Shown here piece after piece: positions 7,813 through 34,387 of a DNA stretch of 40,780 nt. The stretch's first letter is position 1, and every line of letters begins with the position of its first letter. Source of the DNA: Dimorphilus gyrociliatus (Eukaryota; Animalia; Annelida); assembly GCA_904063045.1 (NCBI GenBank), contig CAJFCJ010000104.1:1-40780 (forward strand), given 5' to 3'. The notes below the pieces were generated by a model. It worked only from the letters and a program-made list of their open reading frames with translations, did no database searches and had not been told where the DNA came from. The position numbers and the translations under genes are program-made.

Positions 7813-8276
7813 ACTAAATGATTAATACTTCTTTCATTCTTCATATTGTTATGCTAATCTCTAAATCTCTAAAACATAACTTTTACCTTAGAGGTAAAAT
7901 TGAATACGCATTCCTTTTGCATTAATCATTTAGTACAGTTACAAGGTAAAAGTTTTTATAATTGTGCAATCGAGGGGTTTTTGTTAAGTTTAGTTATGAA
8001 TTCCGTATACATATAATGGTGGAAGTTTAGAAAAAGTGTTATATCATAGAAATTATAATGGTGGAAGTTTAGAAAGACATTTATTTAGTAGAAATAGAGC
8101 CTAGAACTTTAAAAAGGCTTTTATTTTGTAGGAAACATATTCCTTGACCAAAATTATCCCATTTACAGTTATCCAGAACTACATTAATTACTTGATGTAA
8201 ATGGTGATTTATTAATGGACAATTATCTGAAAAAACCTCCTGAATTTTTCATATATTTAAAAAACTTTTATATTGA
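7813..8276. repeat. ~464-bp direct repeat R, first of 5 copies (also 13995-14457, 20185-20648, 26375-26837, 32320-32783)
   Basis: The sequence from actaaatgattaatac to ttttatattga is essentially identical in all five copies. The flanks diverge left of 7813 and right of 32783. Confidence 0.93.
8005..8150. repeat. 42-bp-period degenerate minisatellite inside R
   Basis: ataatggtggaagtttagaaa recurs with 42-bp spacing, followed by a 40-bp step. It is homologous to 37100-37270. Confidence 0.7.
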
Positions 8277-9029
8277 TCTTTTATATTCAGATATTCTAAC
8301 AATTTTTCTGGACTGTAAACCAGATAATTGTACAAAAGTCATAGTGTAATATAAAATCAGTATAAATTATAATTTTCAGATTCTCTTTACAAAAAAAAAT
8401 ATTTTAGTTTCAGAATCTTAAAGTCTACAACTTTCATTAGTGGAATATCCAAAGTTTGTTCTGTACAGAAGTCTGTTTTAATAGTTGTAGTTTTTAGTTT
8501 CATAACTTTCAACTGATTTTGAATTATTTCTTCATCATCATCATATAAATTATCATCCAAACAATCATCTAATTATTGAGTTTTAGTTCTAAATTAGCAA
8601 GTTTAAACAACCAGTTAACAGTTAAAACTGAACTGCCAAACTAGGGAAATGCATTTCCTTTTATACATTTACCAAAACTTGGGTTCACTTGGTCAAAAGA
8701 TTATGAAGTTGAAATGTAACAGTCTCACAATGCACATATAACAAAGACATGAAAAACTATTGCATCACTTCTGGCTAACATGTGTCACTGCAAAAACAAG
8801 CCTGCCTCTTTGGCATCTGTTTTTGAATAAGATGTAACAAGTTTGACATGCATTTTTTCTATATTGTTTGTTCCATTGTTAATTCTATAATGCAACATCT
8901 GTTTTTGGTCAAAGAATTATACTTTATGCGAACTAAAAGCCTTTTTAGAATTCAAAGCATCTAATTCCACTAAATAAGGTCTTTCTTTGGTTTGGGTTAT
9001 TAATTCCATCAAAAAGTGGTTTTTTTCTA

Positions 9030-9528
9030 ATGTTTCACTATTCTAATTCCTTTAAAATAAGATCTATCAAAAGTCTTTATATTATAATTCCAAAGTGCAC
9101 AAAATGTAAAATTGAATACAATTCAATGGGACATATTTTGAGTACAGTTCATTTTCCATTTCATAATTTAAAATTTTGTGTAAATACTACTTGTAAAACT
9201 GGAGAATATCTATGTAAAAAGGATGATTATTGTATATCAATTGAATTAGTTTGTGATGGAATTGTTCATTGTACTCTTGCAGATGATGAACAAAATTGTG
9301 GTATATATTTCCCCTAACTAGAATTTTAAAATTTGAAAAAATTTATCTTTATTGTTAATTCAACAGATAGATTATTTTGAACCAAAGGGATATTTTAAGT
9401 GTAGAAATGATCAATCATACATCACTCTGGATAAAGTATTTGATGGAATTGTTAATTGTAGGGAAGGAAGTGATGAACTAAATTGCAAACTATACTTTAA
9501 ATGTCCATCCATACGCAAATATGGAAGA
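9030..9528 (+). pseudogene. Two-exon LDLa-repeat gene fragment (unit 1)
   Basis: TCKTGEYLCKKDDYCISIELVCDGIVHCTLADDEQNC, then intron 9301-9370, then GYFKCRNDQSYITLDKVFDGIVNCREGSDELNCKLYFKCP. It is truncated at ~9529 by a foreign segment. Confidence 0.75.
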
Positions 9529-9636
9529 TTTCTTAGAATCTAGAGCTTCATACTATTATTCTCTATCTTATTAGTCTCTTCAACATGAAATGAGTCAAGT
9601 TGTTCATCATCTAAAGTGGGATTAATTTGTCCCTTC
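9529..9636 (-). repeat. Decayed copy of the first ~35 codons of the Dispatched-like gene (also at ~15710, ~21895, ~28090)
   Basis: Aligns to 13486-13594 with a few substitutions, and the ATG is lost. Confidence 0.85.
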
Positions 9637-10197
9637 AATCAAATTCCCAAATTATAACACACTTGATAAGATTCAATAAATTATAACCACCTAATAATAC
9701 TTGAAACGGGGTTATAAAATTAATTTATCCTTAATGTCATGGTTAAAAGCATGTTATACAATTTGAGTTTCAGTCAAAACTCTCCTACTTGGACCTCAAA
9801 TTATTAAATTGGATTCTCAGTCACAAAAGCTTTGTCTCATATAGCTTCTAGAAAATATTGTCTAGATGAGAAATCAGTCGAATGGTCTTTATGTTTAGAA
9901 TTAGGATTTTGAAATAAATGAAGATTGCACTTTCAAACTTGAACTATTGAACAATGTGACATTACATGTTCTGAATGCAGAAAGAGATGTATTCTTTCAC
10001 AAGATGAAATTTACAGTAATAGGTGTCTAAAAGTTAAGAGGATAATTTGAAAGACTTCACAATGCTTTCATCACACACAGTGCAAAAGAAAGGTGATAAG
10101 TATCATAGCTTTTAAAAATTTTTCTAAACTTCAGGTATAAAAGAATTCGAAATAAAATTAGAAAATATCTTTTGGTATGAGGAACTGATAACTTTTT

Positions 10198-13100
10198 CTA
10201 CTGATTGCTACTCTGTTGTCTATTACATCTACTGATAATCCATGAATAAACTGGTTTTAATGATCCAAAATTATTTTGCGGTCCAAACATACCCAGAATT
10301 GTAGAAAAAAAACCCAGAGCCCATACAATTGAAAAACCAATAGTTGCAAACATAAAAGCTCCAAATTCAACAAAAAATAAAAGATCTCCCAATAACAAGA
10401 AAAATGAAGCTCCTAGTGTTGTACTAGCTCCAGAAAGAACTGAAACACCGACTTGAGTCAACATATCTTTTACTCTTTCTTCTCTTGATTTGTAAACTGA
10501 TCTGGAATAGCCTTCTGCTAAATGTACAATATAGTCCACAGCCAATCCAACAACCAAAACGGAATTCAAAGATTCCATTAACCCTAGTTTCCAACCAGCT
10601 ATTGGCAATACACCAATAACACAAACTGTAACACAAGCAATAGTTATAGTAGCCAAAATGCCAACAAATATATTATGGGTTGCAACAATAAGAATAGGGC
10701 ATGATAAACCAACTCCAATTGCAATGCCAGTAATAGCTGAACCTACCAATATCTGTAGAAATAAAGATATCACATGATATTTTAAAAATTAAATTAAAAA
10801 AAGTGTACAAACTCTTTGAACTGCCAACCAATGCCATATAGATTTTCCACTATCTACCCTTTCAACATTCTCAATAGCTGTTTGCCAAACACCATTTAAT
10901 TCATTTGGTAAATTTTCACTCTAATGAAAAAAAGGAAACATTTTAAAAATTATCTTTTCTTATCATCATTATCTTCATCATTTTCAAAAGTTACCTGTTT
11001 ATTGATAAAATCCTCCCATTTATCCCTAATTTCTAAACCTTTAGTGTATCCTATTCTATTCCTTTCAATTGTTGTATTTACAATAATGGCAGCATATTTT
11101 AGCTTTGTTCCATAGACAATTGTCTCTAAATGTTTTTTATAAGTGACACTTCCCTTTAACTTCTCTTCTCCTAAAAGTTCATTGAAGAGTGCAAAGTCAG
11201 TTGATCGTCTTGGAGGACTGGTACCAGGAGGTGGATTAGTTCCATTAAATAACCACCAATCCATAGCTAATTCAAAATGTTTGTTAACAGCTTCACCTTT
11301 CAATTTTCCTATATCCTTGTATAATCCATATTATCATTAGCAATATGTCATGGCTGGTTCTGACATCAAAAGGAATGCTGTGTTTATATGTCAAATTCAA
11401 GGCATCATTCTGAAACATTATTTATATGTTTTGATTTCTTAGAAAGAAATTAAAACTAAAAAACAAACTTTGTAAAATTCTATCATATTCTTCATAAAAC
11501 ACAACACTTCCGGTACATTTGTACTCTTATCCCTCTTTATGTACAAATCTTTGGTGTTTTCTTCTTTTAAATTATGTAATAGTTGACAGAATTCAAGAAA
11601 TTTTGTTGAGTTTTATTACTACTCAAATTAAAGTCATTATCCCAATGTTGTTTTCCAGTACATTTAAAATCCGTATGATAACAATCAGATCTATCTTGTG
11701 GTTTTAGACCAAAAACAAGATAGATTTAATGATATTATCAGGATTTCCTTTATATTTTGTAGATGCATCAGGCAAGGTATCGACCATAGTTACTGCTATC
11801 CTTTAAGAATTTTGTTTCTTCCTGATTTACTTTCAAAGTACTTGCAAAATAGACAAAAGCTGCAAAAAGTCCAGCAAAAAATGCAAGTATAAACCATCTT
11901 GCAATTCTATTTGTAATTAATTTAAAATATGGTCCAGAGAAGAATCTAACAATAATATTCTTCTTTTAATATCATTACTATTATCTTTATCTTTGGATTT
12001 TTTTTACAGCAACAGCAGCATTTAAATTTATCCCAGAAAGTTGCATAAGTAAAAACTACACAAGGAAGGAATATAATCACTGAAAGATAGTTAACTATCA
12101 CCAAAATGGCGGAAAAAACACCAAATGTATAAACAGTCATAAATGGGGAAGCTGCTGACACAATAAAGGCTATTGCAGTTGTAAGAGTGGTATAGAACAT
12201 TGCAATTGATGCCTTTCTATAGCAATGGGACAATCGATGCGCTATAGTGGGATATTTATGATAAGAAGTTTCTCTCCAAGTATCATAGAGAACAAAACAT
12301 TATCAGCTCCAATACCAAGAATGATAAATATGTCTAGAATATGAAAAACACCAAAATATGTAAAGCGTAAAACTCCGTAATAGATAAGATTTGTGATAAG
12401 AAAACTGCTAAAAATAGAATATACTGCCAAAAATGTTATCCAGAATGATTGAGTTTGAATGAGCATAAATACAACAATAAAAAGCATAGAACCCACTGCC
12501 AAACTTAAATCTCTGAATACCATGCTTCGAATTTTAACATTAAGTAGAATAGGACAAAAATGATAAATTCCATACCATTGACACCATTTTCAAAGTATTC
12601 ATCTCCTTTTTCTGTTTGTTTGGATGAAAAAATATAGAACAAAAAATCTTTAGACAGAGAATTTGAATTCAATTTTTAATGATCTTTACCTGCATAATCT
12701 TTCAATAAATCTTCATATCTTTTTGTCATTTCTAAATCTTCCTTATGCTCATCAATTTTGTCAAAACCTTTCAATGGTCCTCCTATATTTATTCTCAATC
12801 TGGTTCTTGATGAAAATGCTCTTTTTCACTTATTTCAGCATCTTTACTAAGGAATACTCAAATTCAGAAGCTGTTTTTTGATCTTTACTAACTTTGTACA
12901 ATATTTCAGTAATGTTGTCAAAATCTTTTGATTTGGTGAAATATTGTAAAATTGACAAAGCAGGTGAACATTTCCCATTTAGGCCTATAAGGCAGAAATG
13001 TTCCTTGTAATTGTTGGTTGCCAAATATTCTTCTTGAACCTTTTAATAGCTAGTAAATTTTCTTTGTAAGGACATTTTTATCTCTGGAAACTCCGACAAA

Positions 13101-13596
13101 ATTCAGTTCTATTGCATTATAAAATATAGTTTGTTGAACTTGTTTAGCATTTTTGTCCCTTCCTCTTGTTATCATATAATCAGGTTCATTTCTTTGACTC
13201 CAAGCCATTGTTCTTAAAAAATGGTCATCTTTTGGAAAGTCCAATGGAATTCTATCAAATACAATTGGAAATATATCAATTCCTCCTAAGAATAGACCAA
13301 CAGTGACTACTGTTAAGCAAATATGAGAGCAAAGGGTAATTCCTGTGAAAGAAAAGGAAATAATTATAGTTAAATAGAACAGTATATCTTTAAAAAACAA
13401 AACACTCACCAAAAGTTAACTTTGGTTGATTCATTAAGAATTTGCATAATTTTAATGGTTCCCGATTAATTTCTTTATCAAGTTCTTTCTTAGAATCTAG
13501 AGCTTCCAAGCTATTATTCTCTATCTTATTAGTCTCTTCAACATGAAATGAGTCAAGTTGTTCATCATCAAAAGTGGGATTAATTTCTCCCTCCAT
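10198..13596 (-). pseudogene. Dispatched-like RND transporter copy 1, frameshifted as assembled
   Basis: Same exons as copy 4 but a net 12 nt shorter, with many 1-nt indels that break the ORFs. These may be consensus errors. Confidence 0.8.
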
Positions 13597-15210
13597 TATT
13601 TGATGCCAACTGAGCAAAAACCTCTCGATTGCACAATTATAAAAAACATTCCTTTTACCAGTTTTCGTAATGAAACAGAATTCATAAGTCACATAGAGGT
13701 AAAATTGAATCCGCATTCCTTTTGCATTAATCATTTAGAGATTAGCATAACAATATGAAGAATGAAAGAAGTACAGTTACATAGAAAAAAATGAAAAAAA
13801 ACCATAACAAGGCCTAAAATTGTGAAAAATATCAAAAATATAGTCATTTAACAAACAAAAGGACTAGGCATTGTATTTGTGAAAAATTGTAAAAAACAGA
13901 CAGCTGTCTGCTGTTTATTTTTTTATTTTGTCATCAGGAGTTGAATATTAGACCAATTCAGCTGCATTGGAAGTGTTTATTTGTGTGTAACTGTACTAAA
14001 TGATTAATACTTCTTTCATTCTTCATATTGTTATGCTAATCTCTAAATCTCTAAAACATAACTTTTACCTTAGAGGTAAAATTGAATACGCATTCCTTTT
14101 GCATTAATCATTTAGTACAGTTACAAGGTAAAAGTTTTTATAATTGTGCAATCGAGGGGTTTTTGTTAAGTTTAGTTATGAATTCCGTATACATATAATG
14201 GTGGAAGTTTAGAAAAAGTGTTATATCATAGAAATTATAATGGTGGAAGTTTAGAAAGACATTTATTTAGTAGAAATAGAGCCTAGAACTTTAAAAAGGC
14301 TTTTATTTTGTAGGAAACATATTCCTTGACCAAAATTATCCCATTTACAGTTATCCAGAACTACATTAATTACTTGATGTAAATGGTGATTTATTAATGG
14401 ACAATTATCTGAAAAAACCTCCTGAATTTTTCATATATTTAAAAACTTTTATATTGATCTTTTATATTCAGATATTCTAACAATTTTTCTGGACTGTAAA
14501 CCAGATAATTGTACAAAAGTCATAGTGTAATATAAAATCAGTATAAATTATAATTTTCAGATTCTCTTTACAAAAAAAAATATTTTAGTTTCAGAATCTT
14601 AAAGTCTACAACTTTCATTAGTGGAATATCCAAAGTTTGTTCTGTACAGAAGTCTGTTTTAATAGTTGTAGTTTTTAGTTTCATAACTTTCAACTGATTT
14701 TGAATTATTTCTTCATCATCATCATATAAATTATCATCCAAACAATCATCTAATTATTGAGTTTTAGTTCTAAATTAGCAAGTTTAAACAACCAGTTAAC
14801 AGTTAAAACTGAACTGCCAAACTAGGGAAATGCATTTCCTTTTATACATTTACCAAAACTTGGGTTCACTTGGTCAAAAGATTATGAAGTTGAAATGTAA
14901 CAGTCTCACAATGCACATATAACAAAGACATGAAAAACTATTGCATCACTTCTGGCTAACATGTGTCACTGCAAAAACAAGCCTGCCTCTTTGGCATCTG
15001 TTTTTGAATAAGATGTAACAAGTTTGACATGCATTTTTTCTATATTGTTTGTTCCATTGTTAATTCTATAATGCAACATCTGTTTTTGGTCAAAGAATTA
15101 TACTTTATGCGAACTAAAAGCCTTTTTAGAATTCAAAGCATCTAATTCCACTAAATAAGGTCTTTCTTTGGTTTGGGTTATTAATTCCATCAAAAAGTGG
15201 TTTTTTTCTA

Positions 15211-15709
15211 ATGTTTCACTATTCTAATTCCTTTAAAATAAGATCTATCAAAAGTCTTTATATTATAATTCCAAAGTGCACAAAATGTAAAATTGAATAC
15301 AATTCAATGGGACATATTTTGAGTACAGTTCATTTTCCATTTCATAATTTAAAATTTTGTGTAAATACTACTTGTAAAACTGGAGAATATCTATGTAAAA
15401 AGGATGATTATTGTATATCAATTGAATTAGTTTGTGATGGAATTGTTCATTGTACTCTTGCAGATGATGAACAAAATTGTGGTATATATTTCCCCTAACT
15501 AGAATTTTAAAATTTGAAAAAATTTATCTTTATTGTTAATTCAACAGATAGATTATTTTGAACCAAAGGGATATTTTAAGTGTAGAAATGATCAATCATA
15601 CATCACTCTGGATAAAGTATTTGATGGAATTGTTAATTGTAGGGAAGGAAGTGATGAACTAAATTGCAAACTATACTTTAAATGTCCATCCATACGCAAA
15701 TATGGAAGA
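15211..15709 (+). pseudogene. LDLa-repeat gene fragment (unit 2)
   Basis: Same sequence as 9030-9528. Confidence 0.75.
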
Positions 15710-16378
15710 TTTCTTAGAATCTAGAGCTTCATACTATTATTCTCTATCTTATTAGTCTCTTCAACATGAAATGAGTCAAGTTGTTCATCATCTAAAGTGG
15801 GATTAATTTGTCCCTTCAATCAAATTCCCAAATTATAACACACTTGATAAGATTCAATAAATTATAACCACCTAATAATACTTGAAACGGGGTTATAAAA
15901 TTAATTTATCCTTAATGTCATGGTTAAAAGCATGTTATACAATTTGAGTTTCAGTCAAAACTCTCCTACTTGGACCTCAAATTATTAAATTGGATTCTCA
16001 GTCACAAAAGCTTTGTCTCATATAGCTTCTAGAAAATATTGTCTAGATGAGAAATCAGTCGAATGGTCTTTATGTTTAGAATTAGGATTTTGAAATAAAT
16101 GAAGATTGCACTTTCAAACTTGAACTATTGAACAATGTGACATTACATGTTCTGAATGCAGAAAGAGATGTATTCTTTCACAAGATGAAATTTACAGTAA
16201 TAGGTGTCTAAAAGTTAAGAGGATAATTTGAAAGACTTCACAATGCTTTCATCACACACAGTGCAAAAGAAAGGTGATAAGTATCATAGCTTTTAAAAAT
16301 TTTTCTAAACTTCAGGTATAAAAGAATTCGAAATAAAATTAGAAAATATCTTTTGGTATGAGGAACTGATAACTTTTT

Positions 16379-19300
16379 CTACTGATTGCTACTCTGTTGT
16401 CTATTACATCTACTGATAATCCATGAATAAACTGGTTTTAATGATCCAAAATTATTTTGCGGTCCAAACATACCCAGAATTGTAGAAAAAAAACCCAGAG
16501 CCCATACAATTGAAAAACCAATAGTTGCAAACATAAAAGCTCCAAATTCAACAAAAAATAAAAGATCTCCCAATAACAAGAAAAATGAAGCTCCTAGTGT
16601 TGTACTAGCTCCAGAAAGAACTGAAACACCGACTTGAGTCAACATATCTTTTACTCTTTCTTCTCTTGATTTGTAAACTGATCTGGAATAGCCTTCTGCT
16701 AAATGTACAATATAGTCCACAGCCAATCCAACAACCAAAACGGAATTCAAAGATTCCATTAACCCTAGTTTCCAACCAGCTATTGGCAATACACCAATAA
16801 CACAAACTGTAACACAAGCAATAGTTATAGTAGCCAAAATGCCAACAAATATATTATGGGTTGCAACAATAAGAATAGGGCATGATAAACCAACTCCAAT
16901 TGCAATGCCAGTAATAGCTGAACCTACCAATATCTGTAGAAATAAAGATATCACATGATATTTTAAAAATTAAATTAAAAAAGTGTACAAACTCTTTGAA
17001 CTGCCAACCAATGCCATATAGATTTTCCACTATCTACCCTTTCAACATTCTCAATAGCTGTTTGCCAAACACCATTTAATTCATTTGGTAAATTTTCACT
17101 CTAATGAAAAAAGGAAACATTTTAAAAATTATCTTTTCTTATCATCATTATCTTCATCATTTTCAAAAGTTACCTGTTTATTGATAAAATCCTCCCATTT
17201 ATCCCTAATTTCTAAACCTTTAGTGTATCCTATTCTATTCCTTTCAATTGTTGTATTTACAATAATGGCAGCATATTTTAGCTTTGTTCCATAGACAATT
17301 GTCTCTAAATGTTTTTTATAAGTGACACTTCCCTTTAACTTCTCTTCTCCTAAAAGTTCATTGAAGAGTGCAAAGTCAGTTGATCGTCTTGGAGGACTGG
17401 TACCAGGAGGTGGATTAGTTCCATTAAATAACCACCAATCCATAGCTAATTCAAAATGTTTGTTAACAGCTTCACCTTTCAATTTTCCTATATCCTTGTA
17501 TAATCCACTATTATCATTAGCAAATATGTCATGGCTGGTTCTGACATCAAAAGGAATGCTGTGTTTATATGTCAAATTCAAGGCATCATTCTGAAACATT
17601 ATTTATATGTTTTGATTTCTTAGAAAGAAATTAAAACTAAAAAACAAACTTTGTAAAATTCTATCATATTCTTCATAAAACACAACACTTCCGGTACATT
17701 TGTACTCTTATCCCTCTTTATGTACAAATCTTTGGTGTTTTCTTCTTTTAAATTATGTAATAGTTGACAGAATTCAAGAAATTTTTGTTGAGTTTTATTA
17801 CTACTCAAATTAAAGTCATTATCCCAATGTTGTTTTCCAGTACATTTAAAATCCGTATGATAACAATCAGATCTATCTTGTGGTTTTAGACCAAAAACAA
17901 GATAGATTTTAATGATATTATCAGGATTTCCTTTATATTTTGTAGATGCATCAGCAAGGTATCGACCATAGTTACTGCTATCCTTTAAGAATTTTGTTTC
18001 TTCCTGATTTACTTTCAAAGTACTTGCAAAATAGACAAAAGCTGCAAAAAGTCCAGCAAAAAATGCAAGTATAAACCATCTTGCAATTCTATTTGTAATT
18101 AATTTAAAATATGGTCCAGAGAAGAATCTAACAATAATATTCTTCTTTTTAATATCATTACTATTATCTTTATCTTTTGGATTTTTTTTACAGCAACAGC
18201 AGCATTTAAATTTATCCCAGAAAGTTGCATAAGTAAAAACTACACAAGGAAGGAATATAATCACTGAAAGATAGTTAACTATCACCAAAATGGCGGAAAA
18301 AACACCAAATGTATAAACAGTCATAAATGGGGAAGCTGCTGACACAATAAAGGCTATTGCAGTTGTAAGAGTGGTATAGAACATTGCAATTGATGCCTTT
18401 CTATAGCAATGGGACAATCGATGCGCTATAGTGGGATATTTATGATAAGAAGTTTCTCTCCAAGTATCATAGAGAACAAAAACATTATCAGCTCCAATAC
18501 CAAGAATGATAAATATGTCTAGAATATGAAAAACACCAAAATATGTAAAGCGTAAAACTCCGTAATAGATAAGATTTGTGATAAGAAAACTGCTAAAAAT
18601 AGAATATACTGCCAAAAATGTTATCCAGAATGATTGAGTTTGAATGAGCATAAATACAACAATAAAAAGCATAGAACCCACTGCCAAACTTAAATCTCTG
18701 AATACCATGCTTCGAATTTTAACATTAAGTAGAATAGGACAAAAATGATAAAATTCCATACCATTGACACCATTTTCAAAGTATTCATCTCCTTTTTCTG
18801 TTTGTTTGGATGAAAAAATATAGAACAAAAAATCTTTAGACAGAGAATTTGAATTCAATTTTTAATGATCTTTACCTGCATAATCTTTCAATAAATCTTC
18901 ATATCTTTTTGTCATTTCTAAATCTTCCTTATGCTCATCAATTTTGTCAAAACCTTTCAATGGTCCTCCTATATTTATTCTCAATCTGGTTCTTGATGAA
19001 AATGCTCTTTTTTCACTTATTTCAGCATCTTTACTAAGGAAATACTCAAATTCAGAAGCTGTTTTTTGATCTTTACTAACTTTGTACAATATTTCAGTAA
19101 TGTTGTCAAAATCTTTTGATTTGGTGAAATATTGTAAAATTGACAAAGCAGGTGAACATTTCCCATTTAGGCCTATAAGGCAGAAATGTTCCTTGTAATT
19201 GTTGGTTGCCAAATATTCTTCTTGAACCTTTTTAATAGCTAGTAAATTTCTTTTGTAAGGACATTTTTATCTCTGGAAACTCCGACAAAATTCAGTTCTA

Positions 19301-19786
19301 TTGCATTATAAAATATAGTTTGTTGAACTTGTTTAGCATTTTTGTCCCTTCCTCTTGTTATCATATAATCAGGTTCATTTCTTTGACTCCAAGCCATTGT
19401 TCTTAAAAAATGGTCATCTTTTGGAAAGTCCAATGGAATTCTATCAAATACAATTGGAAATATATCAATTCCTCCTAAGAATAGACCAACAGTGACTACT
19501 GTTAAGCAAATATGAGAGCAAAGGGTAATTCCTGTGAAAAGAAAAGGAAATAATTATAGTTAAATAGAACAGTATATCTTTAAAAAACAAAACACTCACC
19601 AAAAGTTAACTTTGGTTGATTCATTAAGAATTTGCATAATTTTAATGGTTCCCGATTAATTTCTTTATCAAGTTCTTTCTTAGAATCTAGAGCTTCCAAG
19701 CTATTATTCTCTATCTTATTAGTCTCTTCAACATGAAATGAGTCAAGTTGTTCATCATCAAAAGTGGGATTAATTTCTCCCTCCAT
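16379..19786 (-). pseudogene. Dispatched-like RND transporter copy 2, one coding frameshift as assembled
   Basis: 3 nt shorter than copy 4: two intronic A-run differences and one T-run (T4 to T3) at ~19247 in exon 2. It is probably intact if that base is an error. Confidence 0.75.
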
Positions 19787-21391: not shown

Positions 21392-21895
21392 GTTTTTTTT
21401 CTAATTTTCACTATTCTAATTCCTTTAAATAAGATCTATCAAAGTCTTTATATTATAATTCCAAAGTGCACAAATGTAAAATTGAATACAATTCAATGGG
21501 ACTATTTTGAGTACAGTTCATTTTCCATTTCATAATTTAAAATTTTGTGTAAATACTACTTGTAAAACTGGAGAATATCTATGTAAAAAGGATGATTATT
21601 GTATATCAATTGAATTAGTTTGTGATGGAATTGTTCATTGTACTCTTGCAGATGATGAACAAAATTGTGGTATATATTTCCCCTAACTAGAATTTTAAAA
21701 TTTGAAAAAATTTATCTTTATTGTTAATTCAACAGATAGATTATTTTGAACCAAAGGATATTTTAAGTGTAGAAATGATCAATCATACATCACTCTGGAT
21801 AAAGTATTTGATGGAATTGTTAATTGTAGGAAGGAAGTGATGAACTAAATTGCAAACTATACTTTAAATGTCCATCCATACGCAAATATGGAAGA
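21392..21895 (+). pseudogene. LDLa-repeat gene fragment (unit 3, extra 1-nt deletions)
   Basis: Same sequence as 9030-9528 with several single-base deletions. Confidence 0.7.
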
Positions 21896-22563
21896 TTCTT
21901 AGAATCTAGAGCTTCATACTATTATTCTCTATCTTATTAGTCTCTTCAACATGAAATGAGTCAAGTTGTTCATCATCTAAAGTGGGATTAATTTGTCCCT
22001 TCAATCAAATTCCCAAATTATAACACACTTGATAAGATTCAATAAATTATAACCACCTAATAATACTTGAAACGGGGTTATAAAATTAATTTATCCTTAA
22101 TGTCATGGTTAAAAGCATGTTATACAATTTGAGTTTCAGTCAAAACTCTCCTACTTGGACCTCAAATTATTAAATTGGATTCTCAGTCACAAAAGCTTTG
22201 TCTCATATAGCTTCTAGAAAATATTGTCTAGATGAGAAATCAGTCGAATGGTCTTTATGTTTAGAATTAGGATTTTGAAATAAATGAAGATTGCACTTTC
22301 AAACTTGAACTATTGAACAATGTGACATTACATGTTCTGAATGCAGAAAGAGATGTATTCTTTCACAAGATGAAATTTACAGTAATAGGTGTCTAAAAGT
22401 TAAGAGGATAATTTGAAAGACTTCACAATGCTTTCATCACACACAGTGCAAAAGAAAGGTGATAAGTATCATAGCTTTTAAAAATTTTTCTAAACTTCAG
22501 GTATAAAAGAATTCGAAATAAAATTAGAAAATATCTTTTGGTATGAGGAACTGATAACTTTTT

Positions 22564-25500
22564 CTACTGATTGCTACTCTGTTGTCTATTACATCTACTG
22601 ATAATCCATGAATAAACTGGTTTTAATGATCCAAAATTATTTTGCGGTCCAAACATACCCAGAATTGTAGAAAAAAAACCCAGAGCCCATACAATTGAAA
22701 AACCAATAGTTGCAAACATAAAAGCTCCAAATTCAACAAAAAATAAAAGATCTCCCAATAACAAGAAAAATGAAGCTCCTAGTGTTGTACTAGCTCCAGA
22801 AAGAACTGAAACACCGACTTGAGTCAACATATCTTTTACTCTTTCTTCTCTTGATTTGTAAACTGATCTGGAATAGCCTTCTGCTAAATGTACAATATAG
22901 TCCACAGCCAATCCAACTACCAAAACGGAATTCAAAGATTCCATTAACCCTAGTTTCCAACCAGCTATTGGCAATACACCAATAACACAAACTGTAACAC
23001 AAGCAATAGTTATAGTAGCCAAAATGCCAACAAATATATTATGGGTTGCAACAATAAGAATAGGGCATGATAAACCAACTCCAATTGCAATGCCAGTAAT
23101 AGCTGAACCTACCAATATCTGTAGAAATAAAGATATCACATGATATTTTAAAAATTAAATTAAAAAAAGTGTACAAACTCTTTGAACTGCCAACCAATGC
23201 CATATAGATTTTCCACTATCTACCCTTTCAACATTCTCAATAGCTGTTTGCCCAAACACCATTTAATTCATTTGGTAATTTTCACTCTAATGAAAAAAAG
23301 GAACATTTTAAAAATTATCTTTCTTATCATCATTATCTTCATCATTTTCAAAAGTTACCTGTTTATTGATAAAATCCTCCCATTTATCCCTAATTTCTAA
23401 ACCTTTAGTGTATCCTATTCTATTCCTTTCAATTGTTGTATTTACAATAATGGCCAGCATATTTTAGCTTTGTTCCATAGACAATTGTCTCTAAATGTTT
23501 TTTATAAGTGACACTTCCCTTTAACTTCTCTTCTCCTAAAAGTTCATTGAAGAGTGCAAAGTCAGTTGATCGTCTTGGAGGACTGGTACCAGGAGGTGGA
23601 TTAGTTCCATTAAATAACCACCAATCCATAGCTAATTCAAAATGTTTGTTAACAGCTTCACCTTTCAATTTTCCTATATCCTTGTATAATCCACTATTAT
23701 CATTAGCAAATATGTCATGGCTGGTTCTGACATCAAAAGGAATGCTGTGTTTATATGTCAAATTCAAGGCATCATTCTGAAACATTATTTATATGTTTTG
23801 ATTTCTTAGAAAGAAATTAAAACTAAAAAACAAACTTTGTAAAATTCTATCATATTCTTCATAAAACACAACACTTCCGGTACATTTGTACTCTTATCCC
23901 TCTTTATGTACAAATCTTTGGTGTTTTCTTCTTTTAAATTATGTAATAGTTGACAGAATTCAAGAAATTTTTGTTGAGTTTTATTACTACTCAAATTAAA
24001 GTCATTATCCCAATGTTGTTTTCCAGTACATTTAAAATCCGTATGATAACAATCAGATCTATCTTGTGGTTTTAGACCAAAAACAAGATAGATTTTAATG
24101 ATATTATCAGGATTTCCTTTATATTTTGTAGATGCATCAGCAAGGTATCGACCATAGTTACTGCTATCCTTTAAGAATTTTGTTTCTTCCTGATTTACTT
24201 TCAAAGTACTTGCAAAATAGACAAAAGCTGCAAAAAGTCCAGCAAAAAATGCAAGTATAAACCATCTTGCAATTCTATTTGTAATTAATTTAAAATATGG
24301 TCCAGAGAAGAATCTAACAATAATATTCTTCTTTTTAATATCATTACTATTATCTTTATCTTTTGGATTTTTTTTACAGCAACAGCAGCATTTAAATTTA
24401 TCCCAGAAAGTTGCATAAGTAAAAACTACACAAGGAAGGAATATAATCACTGAAAGATAGTTAACTATCACCAAAATGGCGGAAAAAACACCAAATGTAT
24501 AAACAGTCATAAATGGGGAAGCTGCTGACACAATAAAGGCTATTGCAGTTGTAAGAGTGGTATAGAACATTGCAATTGATGCCTTTCTATAGCAATGGGA
24601 CAATCGATGCGCTATAGTGGGATATTTATGATAAGAAGTTTTCTCTCCAAGTATCATAGAGAACAAAAACATTATCAGCTCCAATACCAAGAATGATAAA
24701 TATGTCTAGAATATGAAAAACACCAAAATATGTAAAGCGTAAAAACTCCGTAATAGATAAGATTTGTGATAAGAAAACTGCTAAAAATAGAATATACTGC
24801 CAAAAAATGTTATCCAGAATGATTGAGTTTGAATGAGCATAAATACAACAATAAAAAGCATAGAACCCACTGCCAAACTTAAATCTCTGAATACCATGCT
24901 TCGGAATTTTAACATTAAGTAGAATAGGACAAAAATGATAAAATTCCATACCATTGACACCATTTTCAAAGTATTCATCTCCTTTTTCTGTTTGTTTGGA
25001 TGAAAAAATATAGAACAAAAAATCTTTAGACAGAGAATTTGAATTCAATTTTTAATGATCTTTACCTGCATAATCTTTCAATAAATCTTCATATCTTTTT
25101 GTCATTTCTAAATCTTCCTTATGCTCATCAATTTTGTCAAAACCTTTCAATGGTCCTCCTATATTTATTCTCAATCTGGTTCTTGATGAAAATGCTCTTT
25201 TTTCACTTATTTCAGCATCTTACTAAGGAAATACTCAAATTCAGAAGCTGTTTTTTGATCTTTACTAACTTTGTACAATATTTCAGTAATGTTGTCAAAA
25301 TCTTTTGATTTGGTGAAATATTGTAAAATGACAAAGCAGGTGAACATTTCCCATTTAGGCCTATAAGGCAGAAATGTTCCTTGTAATTGTTGGTTGCCAA
25401 ATATTCTTCTTGAACCTTTTTAATAGCTAGTAAAATTTTCTTTTGTAAGGACATTTTTATCTCTGGAAACTCCGACAAAATTCAGTTCTATTGCATTATA

Positions 25501-25974
25501 AAATATAGTTTGTTGAACTTGTTTAGCATTTTTTCCCTTCCTCTGTTATCATATAATCAGGTTCATTTCTTTGACTCCAAGCCATTGTTCTTAAAAAATG
25601 GTCATCTTTTGGAAAGTCCCAATGGAATTCTATCAAATACAATTGGAAATATATCAATTCCTCCTAAGAATAGACCAACAGTGACTACTGTTAAGCAAAT
25701 ATGAGAGCAAAGGGTAATTCCTGTGAAAGAAAAGGAAATAATTATAGTTAAATAGAACAGTATATCTTTAAAAAACAAAACACTCACCAAAAGTTAACTT
25801 TGGTTGATTCATTAAGAATTTGCATAATTTTAATGGTTCCCGATTAATTTCTTTATCAAGTTCTTTCTTAGAATCTAGAGCTTCCAAGCTATTATTCTCT
25901 ATCTTATTAGTCTCTTCAACATGAAATGAGTCAAGTTGTTCATCATCAAAAGTGGGATTAATTTCTCCCTCCAT
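22564..25974 (-). pseudogene. Dispatched-like RND transporter copy 3, frameshifted as assembled
   Basis: Same exons with multiple 1-nt insertions and deletions, and one substitution at ~22918 (silent in the Disp-like frame). Confidence 0.8.
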
Positions 25975-27590
25975 TATTTGATGCCAACTGAGCAAAAACC
26001 TCTCGATTGCACAATTATAAAAAACATTCCTTTTACCAGTTTTCGTAATGAAACAGAATTCATAAGTCACATAGAGGTAAAATTGAATCCGGCATTCCTT
26101 TTGCATTAATCATTTAGAGATTAGCATAACAATATGAAGAATGAAAGAAGTACAGTTACATAGAAAAAAATGAAAAAAAACCATAACAAGGCCTAAAATT
26201 GTGAAAAATATCAAAAATATAGTCATTTAACAAAACAAAAGGACTAGGCATTGTATTTGTGAAAAATTGTAAAAAACAGACAGCTGTCTGCTGTTTATTT
26301 TTTTATTTTGTCATCAGGAGTTGAATATTAGACCAATTCAGCTGCATTGGAAGTGTTTATTTGTGTGTAACTGTACTAAATGATTAATACTTCTTTCATT
26401 CTTCATATTGTTATGCTAATCTCTAAATCTCTAAAACATAACTTTTACCTTAGAGGTAAAATTGAATACGCATTCCTTTGCATTAATCATTTAGTACAGT
26501 TACAAGGTAAAAGTTTTTATAATTGTGCAATCGAGGGGTTTTTGTTAAGTTTAGTTATGAATTCCGTATACATATAATGGTGGAAGTTTAGAAAAAGTGT
26601 TATATCATAGAAATTATAATGGTGGAAGTTTAGAAAGACATTTATTTAGTAGAAATAGAGCCTAGAACTTTAAAAAGGCTTTTATTTTGTAGGAAACATA
26701 TTCCTTGACCAAAATTATCCCATTTACAGTTATCCAGAACTACATTAATTACTTGATGTAAATGGTGATTTATTAATGGACAATTATCTGAAAAAACCTC
26801 CTGAATTTTTCATATATTTAAAAAACTTTTATATTGATCTTTTATATTCAGATATTCTAACAATTTTTCTGGACTGTAAACCAGATAATTGTACAAAAGT
26901 CATAGTGTAATATAAAATCAGTATAAATTATAATTTTCAGATTCTCTTTACAAAAAAAAATATTTTAGTTTCAGAATCTTAAAGTCTACAACTTTCATTA
27001 GTGGAATATCCAAAGTTTGTTCTGTACAGAAGTCTGTTTTAATAGTTGTAGTTTTTAGTTTCATAACTTTCAACTGATTTTGAATTATTTCTTCATCATC
27101 ATCATATAAATTATCATCCAAACAATCATCTAATTATTGAGTTTTAGTTCTAAATTAGCAAGTTTAAACAACCAGTTAACAGTTAAAACTGAACTGCCAA
27201 ACTAGGGAAATGCATTTCCTTTTATACATTTACCAAAACTTGGGTTCACTTGGTCAAAAGATTATGAAGTTGAAATGTAACAGTCTCACAATGCACATAT
27301 AACAAAGACATGAAAAACTATTGCATCACTTCTGGCTAACATGTGTCACTGCAAAAACAAGCCTGCCTCTTTGGCATCTGTTTTTGAATAAGATGTAACA
27401 AGTTTGACATGCATTTTTTCTATATTGTTTGTTCCATTGTTAATTCTATAATGCAACATCTGTTTTTGGTCAAAGAATTATACTTTATGCGAACTAAAAG
27501 CCTTTTTAGAATTCAAAGCATCTAATTCCACTAAATAAGGTCTTTCTTTGGTTTGGGTTATTAATTCCATCAAAAAGTGGTTTTTTTCTA

Positions 27591-28089
27591 ATGTTTCACT
27601 ATTCTAATTCCTTTAAAATAAGATCTATCAAAAGTCTTTATATTATAATTCCAAAGTGCACAAAATGTAAAATTGAATACAATTCAATGGGACATATTTT
27701 GAGTACAGTTCATTTTCCATTTCATAATTTAAAATTTTGTGTAAATACTACTTGTAAAACTGGAGAATATCTATGTAAAAAGGATGATTATTGTATATCA
27801 ATTGAATTAGTTTGTGATGGAATTGTTCATTGTACTCTTGCAGATGATGAACAAAATTGTGGTATATATTTCCCCTAACTAGAATTTTAAAATTTGAAAA
27901 AATTTATCTTTATTGTTAATTCAACAGATAGATTATTTTGAACCAAAGGGATATTTTAAGTGTAGAAATGATCAATCATACATCACTCTGGATAAAGTAT
28001 TTGATGGAATTGTTAATTGTAGGGAAGGAAGTGATGAACTAAATTGCAAACTATACTTTAAATGTCCATCCATACGCAAATATGGAAGA
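27591..28089 (+). pseudogene. LDLa-repeat gene fragment (unit 4)
   Basis: Same sequence as 9030-9528. Confidence 0.75.
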
Positions 28090-28758
28090 TTTCTTAGAAT
28101 CTAGAGCTTCATACTATTATTCTCTATCTTATTAGTCTCTTCAACATGAAATGAGTCAAGTTGTTCATCATCTAAAGTGGGATTAATTTGTCCCTTCAAT
28201 CAAATTCCCAAATTATAACACACTTGATAAGATTCAATAAATTATAACCACCTAATAATACTTGAAACGGGGTTATAAAATTAATTTATCCTTAATGTCA
28301 TGGTTAAAAGCATGTTATACAATTTGAGTTTCAGTCAAAACTCTCCTACTTGGACCTCAAATTATTAAATTGGATTCTCAGTCACAAAAGCTTTGTCTCA
28401 TATAGCTTCTAGAAAATATTGTCTAGATGAGAAATCAGTCGAATGGTCTTTATGTTTAGAATTAGGATTTTGAAATAAATGAAGATTGCACTTTCAAACT
28501 TGAACTATTGAACAATGTGACATTACATGTTCTGAATGCAGAAAGAGATGTATTCTTTCACAAGATGAAATTTACAGTAATAGGTGTCTAAAAGTTAAGA
28601 GGATAATTTGAAAGACTTCACAATGCTTTCATCACACACAGTGCAAAAGAAAGGTGATAAGTATCATAGCTTTTAAAAATTTTTCTAAACTTCAGGTATA
28701 AAAGAATTCGAAATAAAATTAGAAAATATCTTTTGGTATGAGGAACTGATAACTTTTT

Positions 28759-31700
28759 CTACTGATTGCTACTCTGTTGTCTATTACATCTACTGATAAT
28801 CCATGAATAAACTGGTTTTAATGATCCAAAATTATTTTGCGGTCCAAACATACCCAGAATTGTAGAAAAAAAACCCAGAGCCCATACAATTGAAAAACCA
28901 ATAGTTGCAAACATAAAAGCTCCAAATTCAACAAAAAATAAAAGATCTCCCAATAACAAGAAAAATGAAGCTCCTAGTGTTGTACTAGCTCCAGAAAGAA
29001 CTGAAACACCGACTTGAGTCAACATATCTTTTACTCTTTCTTCTCTTGATTTGTAAACTGATCTGGAATAGCCTTCTGCTAAATGTACAATATAGTCCAC
29101 AGCCAATCCAACAACCAAAACGGAATTCAAAGATTCCATTAACCCTAGTTTCCAACCAGCTATTGGCAATACACCAATAACACAAACTGTAACACAAGCA
29201 ATAGTTATAGTAGCCAAAATGCCAACAAATATATTATGGGTTGCAACAATAAGAATAGGGCATGATAAACCAACTCCAATTGCAATGCCAGTAATAGCTG
29301 AACCTACCAATATCTGTAGAAATAAAGATATCACATGATATTTTAAAAATTAAATTAAAAAAAGTGTACAAACTCTTTGAACTGCCAACCAATGCCATAT
29401 AGATTTTCCACTATCTACCCTTTCAACATTCTCAATAGCTGTTTGCCAAACACCATTTAATTCATTTGGTAAATTTTCACTCTAATGAAAAAAAGGAAAC
29501 ATTTTAAAAATTATCTTTTCTTATCATCATTATCTTCATCATTTTCAAAAGTTACCTGTTTATTGATAAAATCCTCCCATTTATCCCTAATTTCTAAACC
29601 TTTAGTGTATCCTATTCTATTCCTTTCAATTGTTGTATTTACAATAATGGCAGCATATTTTAGCTTTGTTCCATAGACAATTGTCTCTAAATGTTTTTTA
29701 TAAGTGACACTTCCCTTTAACTTCTCTTCTCCTAAAAGTTCATTGAAGAGTGCAAAGTCAGTTGATCGTCTTGGAGGACTGGTACCAGGAGGTGGATTAG
29801 TTCCATTAAATAACCACCAATCCATAGCTAATTCAAAATGTTTGTTAACAGCTTCACCTTTCAATTTTCCTATATCCTTGTATAATCCACTATTATCATT
29901 AGCAAATATGTCATGGCTGGTTCTGACATCAAAAGGAATGCTGTGTTTATATGTCAAATTCAAGGCATCATTCTGAAACATTATTTATATGTTTTGATTT
30001 CTTAGAAAGAAATTAAAACTAAAAAACAAACTTTGTAAAATTCTATCATATTCTTCATAAAACACAACACTTCCGGTACATTTGTACTCTTATCCCTCTT
30101 TATGTACAAATCTTTGGTGTTTTCTTCTTTTAAATTATGTAATAGTTGACAGAATTCAAGAAATTTTTGTTGAGTTTTATTACTACTCAAATTAAAGTCA
30201 TTATCCCAATGTTGTTTTCCAGTACATTTAAAATCCGTATGATAACAATCAGATCTATCTTGTGGTTTTAGACCAAAAACAAGATAGATTTTAATGATAT
30301 TATCAGGATTTCCTTTATATTTTGTAGATGCATCAGCAAGGTATCGACCATAGTTACTGCTATCCTTTAAGAATTTTGTTTCTTCCTGATTTACTTTCAA
30401 AGTACTTGCAAAATAGACAAAAGCTGCAAAAAGTCCAGCAAAAAATGCAAGTATAAACCATCTTGCAATTCTATTTGTAATTAATTTAAAATATGGTCCA
30501 GAGAAGAATCTAACAATAATATTCTTCTTTTTAATATCATTACTATTATCTTTATCTTTTGGATTTTTTTTACAGCAACAGCAGCATTTAAATTTATCCC
30601 AGAAAGTTGCATAAGTAAAAACTACACAAGGAAGGAATATAATCACTGAAAGATAGTTAACTATCACCAAAATGGCGGAAAAAACACCAAATGTATAAAC
30701 AGTCATAAATGGGGAAGCTGCTGACACAATAAAGGCTATTGCAGTTGTAAGAGTGGTATAGAACATTGCAATTGATGCCTTTCTATAGCAATGGGACAAT
30801 CGATGCGCTATAGTGGGATATTTATGATAAGAAGTTTCTCTCCAAGTATCATAGAGAACAAAAACATTATCAGCTCCAATACCAAGAATGATAAATATGT
30901 CTAGAATATGAAAAACACCAAAATATGTAAAGCGTAAAACTCCGTAATAGATAAGATTTGTGATAAGAAAACTGCTAAAAATAGAATATACTGCCAAAAA
31001 TGTTATCCAGAATGATTGAGTTTGAATGAGCATAAATACAACAATAAAAAGCATAGAACCCACTGCCAAACTTAAATCTCTGAATACCATGCTTCGAATT
31101 TTAACATTAAGTAGAATAGGACAAAAATGATAAAATTCCATACCATTGACACCATTTTCAAAGTATTCATCTCCTTTTTCTGTTTGTTTGGATGAAAAAA
31201 TATAGAACAAAAAATCTTTAGACAGAGAATTTGAATTCAATTTTTAATGATCTTTACCTGCATAATCTTTCAATAAATCTTCATATCTTTTTGTCATTTC
31301 TAAATCTTCCTTATGCTCATCAATTTTGTCAAAACCTTTCAATGGTCCTCCTATATTTATTCTCAATCTGGTTCTTGATGAAAATGCTCTTTTTTCACTT
31401 ATTTCAGCATCTTTACTAAGGAAATACTCAAATTCAGAAGCTGTTTTTTGATCTTTACTAACTTTGTACAATATTTCAGTAATGTTGTCAAAATCTTTTG
31501 ATTTGGTGAAATATTGTAAAATTGACAAAGCAGGTGAACATTTCCCATTTAGGCCTATAAGGCAGAAATGTTCCTTGTAATTGTTGGTTGCCAAATATTC
31601 TTCTTGAACCTTTTTAATAGCTAGTAAATTTTCTTTTGTAAGGACATTTTTATCTCTGGAAACTCCGACAAAATTCAGTTCTATTGCATTATAAAATATA

Positions 31701-32169
31701 GTTTGTTGAACTTGTTTAGCATTTTTGTCCCTTCCTCTTGTTATCATATAATCAGGTTCATTTCTTTGACTCCAAGCCATTGTTCTTAAAAAATGGTCAT
31801 CTTTTGGAAAGTCCAATGGAATTCTATCAAATACAATTGGAAATATATCAATTCCTCCTAAGAATAGACCAACAGTGACTACTGTTAAGCAAATATGAGA
31901 GCAAAGGGTAATTCCTGTGAAAAGAAAAGGAAATAATTATAGTTAAATAGAACAGTATATCTTTAAAAAACAAAACACTCACCAAAAGTTAACTTTGGTT
32001 GATTCATTAAGAATCTGCATAATTTTAATGGTTCCCGATTAATTTCTTTATCAAGTTCTTTCTTAGAATCTAGAGCTTCCAAGCTATTATTCTCTATCTT
32101 ATTAGTCTCTTCAACATGAAATGAGTCAAGTTGTTCATCATCAAAAGTGGGATTAATTTCTCCCTCCAT
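28759..32169 (-). CDS. Dispatched-like / Patched-family 12-TM RND transporter with sterol-sensing domain, intact copy (1023 aa)
   Basis: Exons 32169-31983, 31914-31258, 31179-30032, 29972-29556, 29481-29374 and 29313-28759. GT-AG introns are 68/78/59/74/60 nt and the exons total 3072 nt in consistent phase. Topology is 1+5+1+5 TM with two extracellular domains. Motifs: DLSLAVGSMLFI, FIILGIGADNVFVLYDTW, MFYTTLTTAIAF, GWKLGLMES, VGLAVDYIVHLAEGY, SVLSGASTT. Orthology to DISP1/2/3 is not established. Confidence 0.92.
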
Positions 32170-32247
32170 TATTTGATGCCAACTGAACAAAAACCCCTTG
32201 ATTGCACAATTATAAAAAACATACCTTTTACCAGTTTTCATTACTAA

Positions 32248-32513
32248 ACGGAATTCATAACTAAACTTAACAAAAACCCCTCGATTGCACAATTATAAAA
32301 ACTTTTACCTTGTAACTGTACTAAATGATTAATACTTCTTTCATTCTTCATATTGTTATGCTAATCTCTAAATCTCTAAAACATAACTTTTACCTTAGAG
32401 GTAAAATTGAATACGCATTCCTTTTGCATTAATCATTTAGTACAGTTACAAGGTAAAAGTTTTTATAATTGTGCAATCGAGGGGTTTTTGTTAAGTTTAG
32501 TTATGAATTCCGT
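32248..32513. repeat. Perfect 86-bp inverted repeat with a 94-bp loop
   Basis: 32248-32333 is the exact reverse complement of 32428-32513. Confidence 0.9.
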
Positions 32514-32639
32514 ATACATATAATGGTGGAAGTTTAGAAAAAGTGTTATATCATAGAAATTATAATGGTGGAAGTTTAGAAAGACATTTATTTAGTAGAA
32601 ATAGAGCCTAGAACTTTAAAAAGGCTTTTATTTTGTAGG

Positions 32640-33345
32640 AAACATATTCCTTGACCAAAATTATCCCATTTACAGTTATCCAGAACTACATTAATTACTT
32701 GATGTAAATGGTGATTTATTAATGGACAATTATCTGAAAAAACCTCCTGAATTTTTCATATATTTAAAAAACTTTTATATTGAAAATTTTCTTTTTGAAA
32801 ATCACTTTCTTACATCATATGTTCTGACAATTATAATTGGCCAATTTGGAGTTGTGAGCTCTCCAGATAGTTTACAAATAGCTATGCCTATATTTATATA
32901 ATCTTCTGTTATTTTAAATTTCAGTATTAAGAATCCAAATGTTTTTGATTTGATGAGATAATTTTCATAGAAATCCAAAAAGAATTTCTCTTTATAGATT
33001 GAAGGAAATGTTTCACCTGTACTATCTAAATAATACTCTATATAATCAAAGAACTTTTGAATAATGTAGAAAATGGCCACAATCAACCTTGACCTATCAT
33101 ATCAAAGTCTTAACAACATGATTTTTATGGCAACTTTCAAAGATGAATTTTTTATAAACTGTTTACCATTTAATTCATTAAATTCACAAAAGAACTTCTT
33201 TATTCCTTTAAATGACTCCATTTTTTTAATGGTAAAATTTGTAAGATATTTATCCTCAAATATAAGTGGATATCAGAACAAAGTTCAGTCACAGCAATCC
33301 AGAAACCTTTTTCAAAATTTAAGAAACTGTCTCAGCTTTATTTAG
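32640..33345 (-). pseudogene. Inverted paralogous fragment of the SRCR/CTLD/LDLa gene at 37859-40780
   Basis: ORF 32802-33086 (-) parallels ORF 38847-39134 (+), with YLIKSKTFG..GIAICKLSGEL.TPN.PIIIVRTYDVRK shared. DNA similarity spans the equivalent of ~38700-39290. Confidence 0.8.
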
Positions 33346-33489: not shown

Positions 33490-34387
33490 TAAAAAAAAAA
33501 AAAACCATGGATAGAAAACAGTTCGTAGAATGGAGTTTATCAACTTTCAATGTTTCATCAATATACCATACTTGATACTTTGTACTGAAAACTATATTTC
33601 TATGGTTTTTTCTTTTAATATCTCTCAGTAAAAACTCTTTTGGTATTTCACTCATGTTTAGTTCAAAAAGAAGTCTTTGGGATGTTTTGGTCTAGGGTTT
33701 TCCTTTTATTTATTGGCTTTGTTATACTTTCACATAAAATTTTATTCATCTTTGGGAATAGATTAAATCAAGATGAAGGGACTCATCTTCACAAAGAAGG
33801 GGGAAGTTGTACAACTTTGGTTATATTTTACATGCTTGAACTCTATTATTTTATGCAACTTATACATGTACATCTTAAAACATTGGCCAAACATAAGTCT
33901 GATTAGTCAGCTTGAAGGCTCATCTTTAATTACCAATAAAGGTTTGGCCAAGTTATAATTCAATTAACCTTCCTAAATGTTCAACCTTGTAACATCCTCT
34001 TACTAAACAACTGTAAAGTGATGATTGGATGTCAGAGGCAAACCTCAAAGGATATATATCCTCACTATTCTCATTCTGCATCTGGATCCAAGGACCTGGG
34101 AAGATAACCTGGAAACAACCTCCACTGGAACCATCCATCTACTCCTCAACATTGGAAGACAGTTTGGTAATTTGGCAACCTGCTATTATGAACTATCTAC
34201 TCTGCTATCGAACTCTCATATTGTTACTTGCATAAGTATTATTATTGCGAATAAACCATTTTAATTTAAACATTTGTTTAAAGGTTCGAGTAGAACCAGT
34301 ATTGTTATAACTTGCAAACGCATAGATTTCGCCAGCAAGAGCAGTACAATATATTGTAAATGTATGGGAAATGGATGCGATAGAAAA
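33490..34387 (-). mobile_element. MULE transposase relic; right arm of the 864-bp inverted repeat
   Basis: ORF 33440-33655 reads EIPKEFLLRDIKRKNHRNIVFSTKYQVWYIDETLKV. 33525-34387 is the reverse complement of 6259-7122 with scattered substitutions. Confidence 0.75.

Follow-up and report, generated by a model that had tools for sequence, protein, structure and literature searches.

The window analyzed here is the whole of contig CAJFCJ010000104.1 (C104, 40,780 bp) of the annelid Dimorphilus gyrociliatus, one of the 349 contigs of a 77.9 Mb assembly. Self-comparison of the contig revealed a ~6.19-kb unit repeated 4.07 times head to tail, and the units harbor copies of a six-exon gene for a predicted transporter of the Dispatched family (Table 1). 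The array was mapped by self-BLAST and its units were compared in a four-way MAFFT alignment. It has the layout R-U-R-U-R-U-R-U'-R, in which R is a 464-bp segment that opens every unit. When the contig was aligned with itself at a shift of one unit, 16 mismatches and 72 gap openings were counted over 18.3 kb, which is far beyond what chance would give. Tandem Repeats Finder reported no tandem repeat in the window because its period limit of 500 bp is exceeded by the unit period of ~6.19 kb.

Table 1. Features of the array, of its gene copies and of the flanking DNA, with related loci elsewhere in the genome (positions are those of the window unless another locus is named).
Feature	Position	Strand	Remarks
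Whole array	7813-32783		Four units and a 464-bp fifth start; self-BLAST, alignment
Unit 1	7813-13994		6182 bp; deletions cluster at 11328-13057
Unit 2	13995-20184		6190 bp; nearly clean
Unit 3	20185-26373		6189 bp; ~21 single-base indels scattered across the unit
Unit 4	26374-32319		5946 bp; body clean, gene-upstream end rearranged
Fifth start (terminal R copy)	32320-32783		464 bp; 100% identical to 7813-8276
Gene copy 1	10198-13596	-	14 frame-breaking 1-bp indels in E2-E4
Gene copy 2	16379-19786	-	1-bp deletion at 19246 (E2, T run) as the only frameshift; residue 52 is the one other difference from copy 4; public model DgyrCDS14939, truncated, 755 aa
Gene copy 3	22564-25974	-	Frame broken by 13 indels of 1 bp in E2-E5; also one substitution in E6 (22918); public models DgyrCDS14940 (652 aa) and DgyrCDS14941 (101 aa)
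Gene copy 4	28759-32169	-	Only open frame as assembled; 1023 aa, DgyrCDS14942
Copy 4, exon E1	32169-31983	-	
Copy 4, exon E2	31914-31258	-	
Copy 4, exon E3	31179-30032	-	
Copy 4, exon E4	29972-29556	-	
Copy 4, exon E5	29481-29374	-	
Copy 4, exon E6	29313-28759	-	Stop codon at 28761-28759
Diverged gene-upstream end of unit 4	32187-32333		Alignment
LDLa fragment, unit 4	27666-28068	+	Two LDLa modules, PF00057, 5.7e-7 and 8.5e-5
LDLa fragment, units 1-3	9105-9507, 15286-15688, 21498-21833	+	Same fragment
LDLa-LRR-7TM relatives	L029:4808-8854, L030:2544-4394		Elsewhere in the genome
Dispersed repeat in unit	Unit positions 761-1290 (14755-15284)		At least 40 genome copies, 80-93%, one partial at 97%
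Related inverted repeat piece	Unit positions 200-341 (14194-14335)		Inside R
Inverted repeat, left arm	6259-7122	-	864 bp
Inverted repeat, right arm	33525-34387	+	99.2% identical to left arm

A six-exon model of the gene was built for unit 4 from open reading frames (ORFs), from a tblastx comparison with a paralogue on contig C4 and from GT-AG splice sites. The five introns of 68, 78, 59, 74 and 60 nt are all of the GT-AG type, and the coding total of 3072 nt corresponds to 1023 codons and a stop. On DgyrCDS14942 (P0079) as deposited, the peptides translated exon by exon fall consecutively on residues 1-62, 64-281, 283-664, 665-803, 804-839 and 840-1023. The model of unit 4 is identical to this deposited 1023-aa protein and was reached independently of it. 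P0079 was used for full-length searches, and the exons were otherwise searched individually.

A sequence-only reading of the window had described a near-identical head-to-tail array with almost no substitutions between its units. Both statements are borne out, the first by a unit-to-unit identity of 99.5% over 18.3 kb and the second by only 2-3 clean substitutions in the unit body. Of the four ~6.19-kb units that it had counted, units 1-3 are full, but unit 4 lacks ~250 bp at its gene-upstream end. The complete six-exon gene expected in each unit was recovered as far as the exon structure is concerned, but not as an intact frame: as assembled, only unit 4 is open, with 1, 14 and 13 frameshifts in units 2, 1 and 3, respectively.

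The nature of these frameshifts was examined in the four-way alignment, which contains 66 difference events. The unit body has 37 simple indels of 1 bp, together with a small number of compound indel shifts, as compared to the clean substitutions mentioned above. An identical base adjoins 92% of the indels (a base drawn at random from the unit would give 55%), and 54% lie in runs with at least three further identical bases (expected 14%). The odd copy at the indel sites was unit 1 in 12 cases (11 of them deletions), unit 3 in 21, unit 2 in two and unit 4 in one. The indels were equally frequent outside the exons. In unit 1 the consensus error locally reaches up to ~0.7%. The unit bodies have diverged by less than 0.05%, and introns and intergenic DNA of the internal units are alike identical. 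In the clean units, the coding sequence differs cleanly at a single position, 32015, which is C in unit 4 and T at the counterparts in units 1-3 (13442, 19632 and 25820), and which is read as Arg instead of Lys at residue 52.

Since the ratio of indels to substitutions exceeds 10 and the indels are concentrated in homopolymers, the frameshifts of units 1-3 look like uncorrected errors of PacBio continuous long reads (CLR), and not like mutation or gene decay. The assembly was made from PacBio RS II P6-C4 reads of a 20-kb library with a 5-kb size cut-off, using PBcR, followed by Quiver and Pilon and by HaploMerger2 (PMC7854359). During polishing, reads may have been mapped preferentially to the cleanest copies, so that the dirtier copies stayed dirty ("winner takes all"). 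Because the frameshifts are read as sequencing errors, all gene copies are probably intact in the animal. Programmed frameshifting as the cause of the indels was rejected on the basis of the indel-to-substitution ratio and the homopolymer context, and true pseudogenes were rejected on the same grounds. For the latter, a real array would comprise genuinely decayed copies in units 1 and 3 and perhaps in unit 2, leaving one working copy and no gain in dosage. Taken at face value, the 14, 1 and 13 frameshifts of copies 1, 2 and 3 would say so; however, ~28 indels accompanied by at most one substitution across the coding DNA of three copies (3 x 3 kb) contradict normal mutation spectra, and the indels are as frequent outside the exons and sit in homopolymers, which makes this explanation barely credible.

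The same indels also affect the public annotation. The four copies are represented by six models, DgyrCDS14937-14942 (310, 159, 755, 652, 101 and 1023 aa), a split that arose because of the homopolymer indels, and DgyrCDS14942 is the only correct full-length model among them. From the order of the accessions, DgyrCDS14937 (310 aa) and DgyrCDS14938 (159 aa) probably belong to copy 1, although their peptides map to no single unit. Gene counts and family analyses for D. gyrociliatus are distorted at this locus by the split models, and the value of the present result is mainly practical, as a correction of the annotation.

With a probability of about 0.65, we interpret the locus as a real and very young tandem duplication in repeat-rich DNA, present in the genome roughly as assembled. 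The tandem arrangement itself is very probably real. Since R measures 464 bp and the reads at least 5 kb, the joins from unit through R to unit should show directly in reads. For the same reason a mis-join across R, through which a single copy (R-U-R) in the animal would have been turned into a false tandem, is unlikely. In addition, two distinct unit ends lead into R, and the own sequence of the longer version is unmatched elsewhere in the genome. Missed adapters in PacBio reads give rise to chimeras with inverted joins, whereas the joins observed here are direct. A false duplication would agree with the complete lack of substitutions among units 1-3 and with a contig that is generally unreliable, but on balance we regard it as highly improbable.

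The number of copies is a different matter. Two or more copies are well argued, and the assembled count of four is uncertain. Several points weigh against taking the locus as assembled. The assembly is the only source of the count of four; the contig is a 40.8-kb orphan with a visibly poor consensus that ends in dispersed repeats; an array of 25 kb built of 6.2-kb units is near the read-length limit of the RS II, so that units could have been gained or lost in assembly; the near-zero divergence of the copies is also expected if reads were re-used in a mis-assembly; and polishing of the "winner takes all" kind is only an inferred reason for units 2 and 4 being clean and units 1 and 3 dirty. Accordingly, the animal might carry two true tandem units, or another number, to or from which PBcR added or dropped copies. 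Few reads of RS II CLR data would span 25 kb of near-identical sequence, the assembler dates from around 2015, the local error of ~0.7% in unit 1 implies a very low effective coverage in some units, and units 1-3 are without reliable distinguishing substitutions. On the other hand, a count of four is nowhere contradicted by the sequence, each unit has indel errors of its own, which means that the units are not simple copies of one consensus, and with 77.9 Mb assembled against a measured genome size of 71-74 Mb the overall over-representation is modest. We therefore hold an artefact in copy number to be possible, though on the doubtful side.

The unit at the array edge departs from the others solely at the gene-upstream end. 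Real substitutions cluster there, at 32015 and at 32187-32260, the latter stretch containing ~10 of them. In place of ~300 bp of the normal unit end, unit 4 carries an inverted copy of R positions 109-194 (32248-32333), which is 100% identical, and the swap lies between motifs common to both sequences: GAATTCATAA; TGTAACTGTACTAAATGATTAAT. Two types of junction between unit end and R are found, three of one and one of the other. No match elsewhere in the genome was found for the ~500 bp of unit sequence on the upstream side of the gene, of which the ~300 bp absent from unit 4 are a part. The edge looks like the product of a conversion or template-switch event between unit end and R. A concentration of substitutions in the edge unit would be expected of a genuine, homogenised tandem array.

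The rearrangement of unit 4 has also created an 86-bp perfect, hairpin-forming inverted repeat (32248-32333 versus 32428-32513) with a 94-bp spacer. This inverted repeat lies upstream of gene copy 4, the one copy that is intact as assembled, at ~80-165 bp from the start codon.

The position of the divergence bears on the age of the array as well. An older array whose units gene conversion or unequal exchange continues to keep identical would show an edge unit more diverged than its internal units, as is the case here, and the inverted repeat that flanks the array is 0.7% diverged as compared to less than 0.05% for the unit bodies. Against this, the internal units are identical also in introns and intergenic DNA; a single genome cannot separate an old homogenised array from a recent one. 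We consider an older array unlikely and retain the very recent amplification.

For the tandem duplication as interpreted above, the following course is proposed. A segment of ~6.19 kb that holds one complete transporter gene, a dead LDLa fragment and transposon debris would have been duplicated. The array would then have grown, most likely by unequal crossing-over between the 464-bp R copies that bound each unit, and at a later stage the edge unit would have undergone the small rearrangement of its upstream end.

To assign the encoded protein, the exons and P0079 were compared with Pfam and with solved structures. The E3 ORF matched the Pfam families PF12349 (Sterol-sensing, 2.8e-12) and PF02460 (Patched, 1.4e-10), and the E6 ORF, which encodes the second bundle of transmembrane (TM) helices, matched PF12349 (3.9e-5). 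With full-length P0079 both families were found past their curated cut-offs (PF12349 1.2e-15, PF02460 3.2e-11). Among solved structures the full protein matched DISP1 (2.9e-41), in an alignment extending across both membrane halves, followed by fly Disp (1.9e-31), NPC1 (~1e-16) and PTCH1 (~1e-10). Dispatched also ranked above NPC1 and PTCH1 when E3 (DISP1 on top, 1.6e-24) and E6 (DISP1 4.6e-16, fly Dispatched 4.3e-14) were searched alone. The ectodomain exons E2 and E4 gave noise only and no detectable sequence match to solved structures, and a search of the ESM Atlas with E3 returned nothing but the generic name "SSD domain-containing protein" (SSD, sterol-sensing domain). Hydropathy read exon by exon predicted 12 TM helices, with TM1 in E2, TM2-7 in E3 and TM8-12 in E6. 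Large loops follow TM1 and TM7, so that two ectodomains are predicted, encoded by E2/E3 and by E3-E5. GxxxD motifs were read directly in TM4 (GIGADN, E3) and TM10 (GLAVDY, E6). We take the acidic residues of the GxxxD/E motifs in TM4 and TM10 to be the ion-coupling residues of this family.

By these matches the gene is assigned to the Dispatched family of SSD transporters of the resistance-nodulation-division (RND) type, within the Patched/Dispatched/NPC1 superfamily. The proposal of a Dispatched-like, sterol-sensing RND transporter with 12 TM helices is thus upheld by PF12349 and PF02460, by DISP1 and fly Dispatched as the best structures and by hydropathy. Judged from family membership, the protein, with its 12 helices, would use a cation gradient to move a sterol, a lipid or a lipid-modified ligand by way of the two ectodomains. 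Its mode of transport is probably like that of other transporters of the Dispatched/Patched/NPC1 type. The suggested link to Hedgehog found no support: the protein belongs to a multi-copy lophotrochozoan clade in which the labels DISP1-like and DISP3-like are interchangeable, and its homologues carry the automatic names "dispatched homolog 1-like" and "dispatched homolog 3-like" without pattern.

The closest relative of the array gene in the genome is DgyrCDS2935 (C4:1401932-1404971), with 71% identity at the DNA and 70% at the amino acid level. It shares the six-exon layout and the Pfam domains of the array gene, but unlike the latter occurs as a single copy, on a contig of 2.5 Mb and in synteny with the gene of a related species. 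This related gene encodes P0001, a protein from Logan genomic contigs of runs SRR23372216 and SRR23372229. A maximum-likelihood (ML) tree was calculated from 30 invertebrate homologues, all with automatic names and with no vertebrate or fly DISP reference among them. In this tree the array protein, DgyrCDS2935 and P0001 form a clade with 100% support, nested in an annelid/lophotrochozoan clade that contains "Lingula DISP1" and DISP1-like names. The sister clade comprises DgyrCDS8401 and proteins named DISP3. With 0.32 the branch of the array protein is the longest of the three (DgyrCDS2935 0.19, P0001 0.25). Over 869 aligned codons, array gene and DgyrCDS2935 differ by 0.20 nonsynonymous (dN) and 1.27 synonymous (dS) substitutions per site. 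Because of these values, which correspond to a ratio of ~0.16, the array gene is considered to be an old paralogue of DgyrCDS2935 that has evolved under purifying selection.

Downstream of P0001 lies a neighbor with Kunitz and thyroglobulin domains; it finds its match in the DNA that follows the C4 gene downstream, and none in the window. Since this neighbor is common to P0001 and C4 and absent from the window, C4 is taken as the ancestral locus and the array gene as a relocated copy. The Logan contig from SRR23372216 (L032, 8738 bp) comprises both the orthologue of the C4 gene and the conserved Kunitz/thyroglobulin neighbor, for which the C4 side is L034 (C4:1392000-1401999). This orthologue could serve to date the split between the C4 and C104 genes.

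Besides the transporter gene, the unit contains an LDLa fragment that matches residues ~92-230 of intronless receptors elsewhere in the genome, which combine LDLa modules, leucine-rich repeats (LRR) and seven transmembrane helices (7TM). Because no LRR or 7TM part follows the LDLa modules within the unit, the fragment is regarded as a dead stump of this relaxin-receptor/GRL101-like family of receptors that couple to G proteins (GPCRs). The LDLa-LRR-7TM family itself gave at least 150 six-frame matches in the 78-Mb genome and 759 first-look candidates, with many long intronless ORFs. According to the genome paper, the GPCR repertoire is conserved and only nine gene families are expanded (PMC7854359).

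Both flanks of the array are mosaics of dispersed repeats common to dozens of mostly small contigs. As these repeats, which also make up parts of the unit, are shared with so many contigs, the contig belongs to this genome, and contamination was rejected on this basis. The idea that the unit is a mobile element or a gene-capturing transposon was rejected too, because elsewhere in the genome only pieces of transposable elements (TEs) and the 71%-identical paralogue on C4 match it. Among the flanking repeats is a pair of inverted arms of 864 bp. Other members of this repeat family in the genome are at most 88% identical, and the 99.2% identity of the two arms points to a recent inverted duplication or conversion. 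No evidence was found that ties this inverted repeat to the mechanism of amplification. In the left flank an ORF at 4796-5209 (-), perhaps together with 4036-4335 (-), had a sub-threshold match to the rhodopsin-type 7TM family PF00001 (1.5e-6, 28.3 bits versus a cut-off of 30.5); the ORF at 4796-5209 is dissimilar to the LDLa-LRR receptors tested. Rfam detected no RNA family across the window.

Taken together, the locus is most likely an ordinary one, in which a gene of a known kind has recently been duplicated in tandem, and it would indicate that young tandem amplicons still arise in the repeat-rich corners of a compact genome. A farther-reaching interpretation would be that the animal truly has four or more intact, expressed copies, which form a recent, dosage-selected amplification of a lipid or sterol transporter whose copy number varies between strains. 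We consider this very unlikely, and selection for dosage in particular is pure speculation. If it were true, a streamlined genome would recently have amplified a Dispatched-like transporter, in parallel to efflux-pump and esterase amplicons, and if the copy number were real and strain-variable, the locus would be a convenient case for studying the dosage of a Dispatched-family transporter.

With the Dispatched family (DISP1, Drosophila Disp and DISP3/PTCHD2) the array protein shares the length of ~1000 aa, the 12 TM helices in the order TM1, ectodomain 1, TM2-6 (SSD), TM7, ectodomain 2 and TM8-12, the GxxxD motifs in TM4 and TM10, and DISP1 and fly Disp as the best structures for both TM halves. 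It differs from the family in that its ectodomain exons are without sequence match to any solved structure, and its identity to DISP1 is only ~25-30%, which is an estimate. As a genomic structure, the array invites comparison with the esterase, P450 and efflux-pump amplicons of insects, recent tandem products of unequal crossing-over at flanking repeats. It differs from them in that the present analysis gives no sign that the array is under selection, varies in copy number or is expressed at a raised level. It resembles them, however, in the head-to-tail arrangement of its units, the short direct repeat that bounds them, the near-zero divergence, the diverged edge and the TE-rich setting.

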